From the NCBI GenBank assembly GCA_025603075.1, contig MU626294.1, positions 1 to 64,000 of the forward strand: a stretch of 64,000 nucleotides of DNA, written 5' to 3'. Of this stretch, positions 29,716 through 32,999 are shown in pieces. The stretch comes from Neoconidiobolus thromboides FSU 785. Lineage: Eukaryota; Fungi; Entomophthoromycota. Position 1 is the first letter of the stretch; every line of letters begins with the position of its first letter. Both the position numbers and the translations under genes were made by a program. The notes under the pieces were generated by a model. It made no database searches. It was not told the DNA's origin and worked only from the letters and a program-made list of their open reading frames with translations.

Positions 29716-30967
29716 ATTTAATCTTTTTCTAGCTAGCTAATATTCTTTAGTAAGGCCAGTGGTAAGGGTGTAGAATTGCTGTATATAAAAACTTATAGTG
29801 AAAATAGTTTAGTTTCTCAATAAAAAATAATAGCTACTATTGCAATTGGGAACTTCTGAAGATTTTAGTAAAAAAAAACTATATAAGAGGTTGTATAAAA
29901 ATAGATTGTAATAGTAAATTTAAATTAAACTATTATCTAAACCATTATTAAATAAACTTACTATTCAAATGTTAGTTATCAATTCTTTATTATGTTTATA
30001 GCTTTTATAGGAGCATTAGCCTATGTTATGGAATGTTTTGATTCTTAGATTCATTCCCCTTTTTTAAAAAGATAACTTTCATCAATATGACCAATTCATA
30101 TAAAATATTAAAATTCCATGGTAAAAAGTAAAATCATATTTTAAAAAATATAGTTATGCTGACGAGATTAGTTAATATTCTAAAGCATTGACTGTTATTC
30201 AAATGTGGATACTATTTTCAATATTATATTTGTATTATAAGAGTATGCTCTATAAAACAGTATGTTTTCTTAAATATCGAGGTCTCGATCCATTACAGAT
30301 AATAAATAGAAAGTATCTAAGTTTCAACTTATTTTAATTATTGTTGTAAAAGTAACTTTCCACCTTTAATAAGAAAATTTAATTAGCTTTTTTACCACTT
30401 AAAAATATAGAATAGAAGCTTGGCAATATGACATTCAAAGTAATTAGAGAAATAACGTAATGAAAAATAAGCATTTTTAGTATTGTAATAAAGACTAAAA
30501 CAACGAATAATAAATAATAATACTACACTTAAATGCAAACCCTTAATAATTACTTGTATTAATTTGAATACAACACAACAATAAGTTTTATTTATAAAAT
30601 AGTTAACCTTAATTTATTTTAATATTCAATATGAGTCATCTAAAATCATGTCAAGTATGAAATTAAAATTAAATTAACCCTTGATTTTAATCTTTTGGGC
30701 AATTATTCTGGCTAAGATTAAGAATTCTTTTTTACAGTTTGGTCAAACTTTAGCTCATTTTAAGTCTGCATAAATAATGTTTGTTACTCTTACTACGATA
30801 AACTCCTGCCCAAACCTTAAACTATTAAAGATAGCATGAATATTCATCCATAAGAGAAAAGAATAAAATTATTAAAAAAATGAGTAATAAAAATAAAAGT
30901 ATATAAGCCCTCAAGATTGCTATTATAATAGTTTTAAAAAAAACAACTTAATTGAACTAGATAGTTC

Positions 30968-31105
30968 ATGTATTGCCACTCCTTTGAAAAGAACTCAAGT
31001 GACTATATCTCAGATCAAGTTTGGAAATCTTTACCACAGACCTACAATAATAATGTTAACCAAATTCGTTTTAGCTCACTTAAAATCCAATCGTTCATTA
31101 TTTAG
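30968..31105 (+). promoter_or_regulatory. uORF encoding an arginine attenuator peptide (AAP), overlapping the CPA1 start out of frame
   Basis: MYCHSFEKNSSDYISDQVWKSLPQ...; D12-Y13-I-S-D-x-x-W19 aligns with Neurospora arg-2 AAP (QDYLSDHLWRA) and yeast CPA1 AAP (QDYISDHIWKT); 45 codons, stop TAG 31103-31105. Confidence 0.9.
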
Positions 31106-32324
31106 ATCTTTTGCTACTGTTAAAGAAGGTTATTACTCTTCACCAGAAGTAATCGACTCCACTCAGGTTCAATATTTAAAATTAAAATCTGGTCAATTAT
31201 TCAAAGGTTTATCCTTTGGTGCTGAAAAAGAATGTAGTGGTGAAGCAGTCTTTACTACCTCTACTGTAGGTTATCCAGAATCGATGACAGACCCTTCTTT
31301 TCGTGGTCAAATATTAGTCTTCACTCAACCTTTAATTGGTAATTATGGAGCCCCTAACACCACCCGAGATGAATTTAATTTACTAAAATATTATGAATCA
31401 GAAAAGATACAAGTAGAAGGTATAATTGTGAATGATTATGCTACTCAATATTCCCATTGGAATGCCATTGAATCTTTGGGTGCTTGGTGTAAGCGTAATA
31501 ACGTACCTGCTATTTCTAATGTAGATACTAGAATGGTTGTTAAATTACTCAGGGATCAAGGGTCTACATTAGCTTCCATGCAATTTGATAAAGAGAAAGA
31601 AAGCGAATATAAAGATCCTAATTTAAGAAATTTAGTCGATGAAGTATCTACTAAAAAAGTATATACAGTTGGAAAAGGAAAAATTAACATTGCAGTTATT
31701 GATTGTGGTATTAAAAATAATATCTTAAGATCATTATTAGGTCAAAGTGAAGATATTAAATTAACTGTATTACCTTGGAATTATGATATTATAAATAACA
31801 AAATTGAAGGTAAAAGTATTCATGACTTTGATGGCTTATTTTTAAGTAATGGACCTGGAAACCCCAATTATTGTCAAGAGTTAATCTCAAATATGTCGTA
31901 TTTAGTTGAGAACTTTAATAAACCTATCTTTGGTATTTGTATGGGAAATCAAGTGTTAGGAAAGAGTATTGGATTAGATGTTTACAAAATGAAATTTGGA
32001 AATCGAGGACATAATCAACCAGCAATTAATTTGCTAACTAATCGTTGTTTTATTACTAGTCAAAATCATGGCTATGCTTTAAATGATACAGTTTTACCTA
32101 ATAATTGGTTAAAATATTTTACTAATGCTAATGATCATTCAAATGAAGGTATTAAACATCAATTCAAACCTATTTCTTCAGTTCAATTTCATCCAGAAGC
32201 TAAAGGGGGACCTATGGATACTCATTTCTTATTCAAAGATTATATTGAGTTAGTTAAACAATACAAACTTAAAGACTTACATTATTATGATGTTGAAAAT
32301 GAGAAAGTCACTGCCTATGCCTAA
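31053..32324 (+). CDS. CPA1: Carbamoyl-phosphate synthase small subunit, arginine-specific, with mitochondrial presequence
   Basis: GEAVFTT..VGYPESMTDPS, SNGPGNP, GICMGNQ, QNHGY and QFHPE motifs; Arg/Ser-rich acid-free N-terminus from ATG 31053. Confidence 0.95.
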   Translation: MLTKFVLAHLKSNRSLFRSFATVKEGYYSSPEVIDSTQVQYLKLKSGQLFKGLSFGAEKECSGEAVFTTSTVGYPESMTDPSFRGQILVFTQPLIGNYGAPNTTRDEFNLLKYYESEKIQVEGIIVNDYATQYSHWNAIESLGAWCKRNNVPAISNVDTRMVVKLLRDQGSTLASMQFDKEKESEYKDPNLRNLVDEVSTKKVYTVGKGKINIAVIDCGIKNNILRSLLGQSEDIKLTVLPWNYDIINNKIEGKSIHDFDGLFLSNGPGNPNYCQELISNMSYLVENFNKPIFGICMGNQVLGKSIGLDVYKMKFGNRGHNQPAINLLTNRCFITSQNHGYALNDTVLPNNWLKYFTNANDHSNEGIKHQFKPISSVQFHPEAKGGPMDTHFLFKDYIELVKQYKLKDLHYYDVENEKVTAYA

Positions 32325-32999
32325 GTAGTTTATTATTCAAATATATTATTCAAATAAATTTTTACTTTTTTATTTATTATTAATATCTTTTGAAAACAAA
32401 TTAACAATTAAATATGAAAATTAATAATTGAAATTTCAAATGCTTAAGTAGTCTTTGTATATAGTTTTAAATTGATTATAATAATTACTTTATTCAATAA
32501 CTTTTTAATTTCCAATTTTTATATCAACTTGATAATTCTAATTTTCACTAAATAAAGTTCAATAAGTTTTAAAGAAAAGGTTATAATAATCAAAAATAAA
32601 GCATTAAGTAAATATTGAGATATAATATTGACGTTGATAATTAGCAGACTAATGTATTATAAATTATAACTTAAATCTAGAATGAAATAAATAGCTACTA
32701 TTATTGAATTTGTAGCTAATCTAATTCTAGTGACTGTGAAGTAAGTTAAATAAAAGAACATCAAATTCGTTATTTTTGAGTAACATAAAATATCTTATTT
32801 ATTCTAAGTAAATTATAGTATGTTATTTTAATTCCAGCTATTTATTATTCCAACACAAAAATACTTATAAAATTCCTTCAGTAAGCCCATTTTCCATTTA
32901 GGTCTTGAAATCTTTAAATTTATCCAACTATTTTTAAAAATGCTCATAAAATCTCAAACTACCTTATCTATTCATAAAAAAAACACAATTGAGCATACA

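Follow-up and report, generated by a model that had tools for sequence, protein, structure and literature searches.

An arginine attenuator peptide uORF that overlaps the CPA1 start codon in Neoconidiobolus thromboides

What becomes of an arginine attenuator peptide (AAP) whose upstream open reading frame (uORF) lacks a stop codon where the ribosome stalls? Among the metabolite-sensing arrest peptides of eukaryotes, the AAP serves as the model, with stalling described at the stop codon of the uORF. A locus in Neoconidiobolus thromboides FSU 785 raises the question. Here, within the stretch of 64,000 nt of contig MU626294.1 that was analysed (hereafter the window, whose first letter is position 1), a uORF with AAP hallmarks reads past the usual stop position and across the start of CPA1/arg-2, the gene for the small subunit of the arginine-specific carbamoyl-phosphate synthetase. 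We assign a probability of roughly 0.7 to the reading as a whole, namely that this is a working AAP uORF which controls translation of the CPA1/arg-2 mRNA by arresting ribosomes in elongation, its extension being a tolerated stop loss.

The uORF, its transcript and the CPA1 gene

The features at issue all lie on the forward (+) strand (X2, X4, X5 and X6 denote sequencing runs):

30900-30906, +: TATA-like box TATATAA, a putative core promoter element, ~30-36 nt upstream of the start of the X6 contig at 30936
30936-30967, +: 5′ leader before the uORF start codon (uAUG), without ATG; covered by the X6 contig (97.5%-identical relative), with the X5 contig starting at 30975
30968-31105, +: AAP uORF, ATG start, 45 sense codons and TAG, overlapping the CPA1 start (sequence read, Pfam)
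30992-31027, +: conserved AAP core, codons 9-20, N-S-S-D-Y-I-S-D-Q-V-W-K (Pfam Leader_CPA1 and relatives)
31037-31042, +: codons 24-25, CAG ACC, predicted P and A sites of the Arg-stalled ribosome, placed by register with 24-codon AAPs
31043-31045, +: codon 26, TAC, likely stop-loss site, aligned with a TAA in Conidiobolus coronatus and unchanged in runs X2, X4, X5 and X6
31053-31105 (53 nt), +: overlap of uORF tail codons 29-45 with CPA1 codons 1-18 (mitochondrial-type presequence), in different frames
31053-32324, +: CPA1/arg-2, arginine-specific carbamoyl-phosphate synthetase small subunit, 423 aa, no intron (Pfam, homologues, tree)

The uORF coordinates (30968-31105), the length of 45 codons, the 53-nt out-of-frame overlap and a 13-nt gap had been put forward in a first-pass annotation, and all are reproduced from the sequence. 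The gap runs from the end of codon 24 (CAG) at 31039 to the main ATG at 31053; seen from the uORF, the main CPA1 ORF lies in the +1 frame, and the uORF ends 50 nt past the main ATG. D12 (GAC, 31001-31003), Y13 (31004-31006) and W19 (TGG, 31022-31024) occupy the codon positions expected of the canonical AAP register, again as that annotation had it. No further ATG occurs between the uAUG and the main AUG, which are 85 nt apart, and the context of the former is weak (T at -3, T at +4), with A at -3 of the latter. Since the uORF overlaps the CPA1 start, ribosomes that have translated it are geometrically barred from forward reinitiation at the main AUG, which upholds what had been claimed on this point.

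Is the downstream gene the arginine-specific enzyme? A Pfam search of the 31053-32324 product returns CPSase_sm_chain (2.4e-44) and class-I GATase (4e-46). The closest matches to this protein come from Entomophthorales (Entomophthora muscae, Massospora cicadina and C. coronatus, at 61-63% identity), and it groups with the entomophthoralean homologues in a maximum-likelihood tree, with support of 100/99 and on a long branch. The genome (24.6 Mb in 799 contigs, ~27% G+C) contains only one stand-alone copy of the CPA1 type, its other match being a separate 2159-aa CAD-like open frame, which marks the window gene as the arginine-specific small subunit. A further CPA1 copy headed by a canonical AAP was looked for in the genome and not found. 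Position 31053 is the sole plausible main start, as no earlier ATG stands in frame and the next in-frame ATG falls within the conserved enzyme domain; the N-terminus that begins there resembles a mitochondrial presequence.

Two side observations concern the surroundings of the gene. Upstream of its ATG, the CPA1 frame meets no stop over 52 codons (30897-31052) and contains no further ATG (P ~0.01 at window composition). A frameshift fusion or an N-terminal extension was considered and judged unlikely: relatives do not keep this stretch open to the same extent (3-49 codons), and its openness here is probably coincidental. Moreover, short AT-rich stretches at 30857-30906 and 32330-32432 have matches in numerous unrelated contigs of the DNA runs and yield a spurious joint from 30892 to 32330 in two runs, which suggests that a dispersed short repeat flanks CPA1 on both sides.

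Is the uORF part of the mRNA? Our transcript evidence consists of assembled contigs. Run X5, which bears the same organism label as the window, contains one contig of very high depth (30975-32317) with 0 differences, gaps or joints and with almost uncovered flanks, an RNA-like pattern. Starting 7 nt after the uAUG, it puts uORF codons 3-45 and the overlap in an unspliced mRNA. Run X6, from another organism label, provides a gene-restricted, RNA-like contig (30936-32315; 34 differences in 1380 nt, 97.5% identical) that spans the uAUG and 32 nt of leader, with a run of A before it. Both contigs stop 7-9 nt before the stop codon, that is, inside the CDS, so their ends reflect assembly clipping and not transcript ends. 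The uAUG is seen within mRNA only in the X6 contig of the close relative, the same-species X5 contig beginning at 30975 in a clipped assembly; the TATATAA at 30900-30906 would fit a transcription start near 30930-30940. An intron that alters the uORF, which the first-pass annotation had named as a threat to its interpretation, was looked for and is ruled out: the RNA-like contigs are colinear with the genome, that of X5 without joints over 30975-32317.

The stretch 31040-31052 is covered by contigs of runs X2, X4, X5 and X6 without differences, and a sequencing error at codon 26 is ruled out by TAC in all four, including the DNA contigs of X2 and X4, which represent two more organism labels. 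The X4 contig shows 16 differences, 2 of them within the uORF and both synonymous for it: one at 31003 (D12, GAC to GAT) and one at 31075, silent for S36 of the uORF but giving A8V in CPA1. These are the only two changes in the long ORF, which is stable in the four related organisms. It is real and common to this species cluster, the genomes of which are too similar (at least 97% identical) to show constraint. As an aside, run X4 (organism C) holds two alternative contigs over 30379-30680 and 32204-32351, with 0-2 versus 11-19 differences, so that the sample holds either two haplotypes or more than one strain.

The peptide and its zygomycete relatives

Does the uORF encode a genuine AAP? Pfam PF08252 (Leader_CPA1) matches residues 10-21 with an E-value of 0.0033; the score of 17.2 bits falls just short of the gathering cut-off of 18.5, and the match is marginal when taken alone. 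In C. coronatus, the CPA1 leader contains a 25-codon uORF (L001:2909-2986) at the equivalent place, whose peptide is identical to that of the window at 19/24 positions. Over codons 1-22, 7 synonymous and 3 non-synonymous codon differences separate the two, with one serine codon-family switch; such a pattern marks selection that acts on the peptide and not on the nucleotides. The same core is present in 7 further zygomycete CPA1 leaders, being identical in C. coronatus and near-identical in Coemansia, Smittium, Basidiobolus, Syncephalis, Dimargaris and Rhizopus, and it agrees with ~68 metagenomic AAPs over D-Y-I-S-D-x-x-W-K. Together, the Pfam match, the identity with the syntenic C. coronatus uORF and the mostly synonymous divergence show that the first 22-24 codons are a genuine AAP, as first proposed, and by the same comparison rule out a chance ORF.

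The window uORF shares with the Neurospora crassa arg-2 AAP and the Saccharomyces cerevisiae CPA1 uORF the same gene, the same leader position and the same core register of D12, Y13, S15, D16 and W19. Common to them, too, is the pairing of a weak uAUG with a strong main AUG, as leaky scanning expects (PMC7969011). Position 17, in contrast, is Q in the window and in most zygomycetes, but H in the canonical N. crassa and yeast AAP. Another difference lies at the far end: canonical uORFs comprise 24-25 codons and stall at their own stop, well upstream of the main AUG, whereas the window has no stop until codon 46.

How unusual is this arrangement? We scanned the leaders at the CPA1 loci of eleven further zygomycete genes for an AAP, reading the exons of the spliced uORFs of Basidiobolus, Syncephalis, Rhizopus and Dimargaris individually from DNA. 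Besides C. coronatus, AAP uORFs were found as follows:

Coemansia reversa: 24 codons, unspliced
Rhizopus delemar: 25 codons, spliced
Dimargaris cristalligena: 25 codons, spliced
Basidiobolus meristosporus: 26 codons, spliced
Smittium culicis: 29 codons, unspliced
Syncephalis fuscata: 30 codons, spliced

With detections in Entomophthoromycotina, Kickxellomycotina, Zoopagomycotina, Basidiobolus and Mucorales, the AAP is widespread in zygomycetes. The first-pass annotation had spoken of a lineage in which the AAP may be undocumented; taken as a sign of absence, this is refuted by AAPs across the zygomycete lineages. A literature search for the AAP in Zoopagomycota found no report, and conservation of the AAP in many fungi is stated in a passage of the review PMC11550727, which cites Hood et al. 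2007. The start contexts of 8/8 zygomycete loci, window included, bear the mark of leaky scanning: the uAUG has a pyrimidine at -3, the main AUG a purine.

A metagenome search with a degenerate DNA pattern for D-Y-I-S-D-x-x-W-K retrieved 69 contigs, ~68 of which represent AAPs, mostly of the ascomycete type and many with CPA1 visibly downstream. Every one of these metagenomic AAPs meets a stop 4-7 codons after W-K, and the other zygomycete uORFs (24-30 codons) all stop short of the main AUG. Apart from the window, the natural AAPs surveyed thus terminate at the stall site or within a few codons beyond it. Among the ~77 AAP loci surveyed, the window has the sole uORF that reaches or crosses the main AUG; its 45 codons, against 24-30 in the other zygomycete loci, confirm the earlier impression of an abnormally long frame across the CPA1 start. 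In the literature searched, no report of a natural AAP uORF that lacks a stall-site stop or overlaps the main ORF was found either.

Entomophthora muscae and Massospora cicadina each possess two CPA1 copies, none of which has an AAP above noise within 3 kb upstream. The element can consequently be lost in this order, and it may have been lost or moved in Entomophthoraceae, the nearest family-level relatives of the window. The same search produced a weak string, Y-S-H-I-Q-A-D-Y-I-C-N, at L003:~419 that is probably noise.

Further observations emerged from the surveyed leaders. In Basidiobolus, Syncephalis, Rhizopus and Dimargaris (L004:2737-2892, L009:2625-2812, L011:2842-2973, L084:2559-2840), the AAP uORF is interrupted at one and the same site by a phase-1 intron, which follows base 1 of codon 18 and falls between D-Q/H and V/I-W. 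No such intron is present in the uORFs of the window, C. coronatus, Coemansia and Smittium, a distribution that suggests an ancient intron within a 25-codon uORF and several losses. The metagenome contig L037 carries a Conidiobolus-like AAP uORF of 27 codons (218-301) with the CPA1 match (876-2156) following only ~575 nt further on, which reflects either an unusually long spacer or an intron in the leader.

Predicted arrest in elongation and the probable origin of the extension

How would such a uORF regulate CPA1? In N. crassa and yeast, the uAUG is weak and the main AUG is reached mostly by leaky scanning; at high arginine, the nascent AAP arrests the ribosome, whereupon scanning is blocked and nonsense-mediated decay (NMD) triggered (PMC7969011, PMC11550727, PMC7049704). 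Transferred to the window, most scanning 43S complexes would leak past the uAUG, a weak site with T at -3, to initiate 85 nt downstream at the strong main AUG, and the minority that translate the uORF would make the conserved core from D12 to W19. At high arginine, this core is predicted to arrest the ribosome after ~24 residues, with the P site at ~31037-31039 (codon 24), a position taken from the register of ascomycete 24-codon AAPs, which stop 5 residues after W. As there is no stop at codon 25/26, the arrest would have to occur during elongation and not at termination. The arrested 80S ribosome, its leading edge at ~31052-31054, and the ribosomes queued behind it may then block scanning to the main AUG. 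At low arginine, ribosomes on the uORF would pass the main AUG, terminate at 31103-31105 and be lost for CPA1 synthesis because reinitiation is impossible.

Can the AAP act without a stop codon at the stall site? Engineered in-frame AAP fusions (Wang, Fang and Sachs 1998; Fang et al. 2004) have sense codons after the AAP as the window does, so that arrest must take place in elongation, and ribosomes reportedly stall on them just after the AAP coding region. These fusions are laboratory constructs in frame with a reporter, whereas the window arrangement is natural and runs out of frame across the main start. AAP function is described as independent of position within the polypeptide in a passage of the review PMC11550727, citing Fang et al. 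2004, and arrest peptides in general work at elongation or termination (PMC7969011). The natural 29-30-codon tails of Smittium and Syncephalis point the same way, suggesting that the stop codon is not essential.

The window uORF departs from the canonical systems in three real ways: arrest cannot fall at termination, ribosomes that have translated the uORF cannot reinitiate at CPA1, and termination is moved 50 nt into the main ORF. The general class of overlapping inhibitory uORFs, of which ATF4 uORF2 is an example, likewise ends inside the main ORF and closes the route of reinitiation at the main AUG to all ribosomes that translate the uORF. ATF4-type uORFs, however, act via eIF2-dependent reinitiation timing and not through a metabolite-sensing nascent peptide.

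Where did the extension come from? The C. coronatus uORF is the closest natural relative found, belonging to the same order-level clade, and neither uORF has an intron. The distance from uAUG to main AUG is 85 nt in the window versus 92 nt in C. coronatus, where TAA closes the 25 codons and a spacer of 14 nt leads to the main AUG; in the window, codon 26 is TAC in the place of that TAA, and the frame reads on. A single base change from TAA to TAC would have been enough for read-through, with the caveat that the two species stand far apart and that lineages differ in their tails. Beyond codon 26, another 19 codons pass before a stop, for which the chance probability is 0.18 at the base composition of the window. 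From codon 29 onwards the tail is the +2 (alternative) frame of the CPA1 presequence, and nothing in its sequence indicates selection. Across an ancestral spacer of just ~14 nt, reinitiation probably counted for little even before the change, so the loss of the stop is most simply seen as a tolerated one. We infer that the 20-codon extension most likely represents a near-neutral stop loss.

Alternatively, the extension may have been selected because the arrested 80S ribosome covers the main AUG and, with no reinitiation, affords tighter or different control. This is how the first-pass annotation had read the locus, with the stalled ribosome directly masking the start codon. The geometry fits, as the P codon ends 13 nt before the AUG and a footprint of ~+15-17 nt reaches 31052-31054; moreover, the arrangement is unique among the ~77 AAP loci, and the long uORF is retained in four related organisms. 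Masking would nevertheless be functionally redundant, since scanning subunits come from the 5′ side and stop behind an arrested ribosome wherever it stands, and covering the AUG adds nothing obvious. In C. coronatus, too, a ribosome at the uORF stop nearly touches the AUG across the spacer of just 14 nt. Retention carries little weight in organisms that are at least 97% identical, and the tail both fits chance in its length (P = 0.18) and doubles as an alternative frame of the presequence. So while the geometric part of the proposal stands, its functional part is an extrapolation from that geometry, and we consider selection for masking unlikely. Equally unlikely, in our estimate, is the combined claim of a natural AAP obliged to arrest in elongation, with the 80S edge on the CPA1 AUG, all uORF ribosomes lost and the coupling to NMD possibly changed.

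Could the AAP instead be decaying or bypassed? The stop loss would then be a step towards loss of regulation, leaving a constitutive damper, or the main transcription start would lie downstream of the uAUG. Compatible with this are the start of the same-species X5 RNA contig at 30975, just after the uAUG, and the four Entomophthora muscae and Massospora cicadina CPA1 copies without an AAP upstream (3 kb each). Yet the core is intact at all conserved positions and diverges synonymously from C. coronatus, and the uAUG context is still weak. As to bypass, the X6 contig of the 97.5%-identical relative takes in 32 nt of leader ahead of the uAUG, both RNA contigs (X5 and X6) are clipped, as their 3′ ends inside the CDS reveal, and a TATA-like box is present at 30900-30906. 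We rate decay or bypass as improbable, a little below masking. Finally, a chance ORF or an assembly error behind a falsely long uORF, for which one might cite that 44 codons remain free of stops with P = 0.018 in AT-rich DNA, is effectively refuted by a peptide that is conserved and syntenic across phyla and by the identical reading of 31040-31052 in independent DNA and RNA runs.

Implications of an AAP without a stall-site stop

The reading we favour, a working AAP with a tolerated stop loss, leaves the principle of AAP control as it stands in textbooks; the stop-less, overlapping form is rare and probably a mild variant. Its use lies in what it separates. A natural AAP lacking a stop at the stall site offers a test of whether arrest in vivo needs termination, the overlap offers one of the share that reinitiation has in CPA1 expression, and the displaced termination of the uORF one of whether coupling to NMD depends on the termination site. 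If the extension proved to be selected, it would represent a distinct regulatory design, with control exerted purely by leaky scanning and a roadblock. The accompanying survey gives a first picture of zygomycete AAP leaders, with a common codon-18 intron, variable tails and an apparent loss in Entomophthoraceae. The practical importance of the window locus is modest, as a known mechanism is refined and no new one revealed; its interest is that of the specialist, as a test case for stop-independent arrest.
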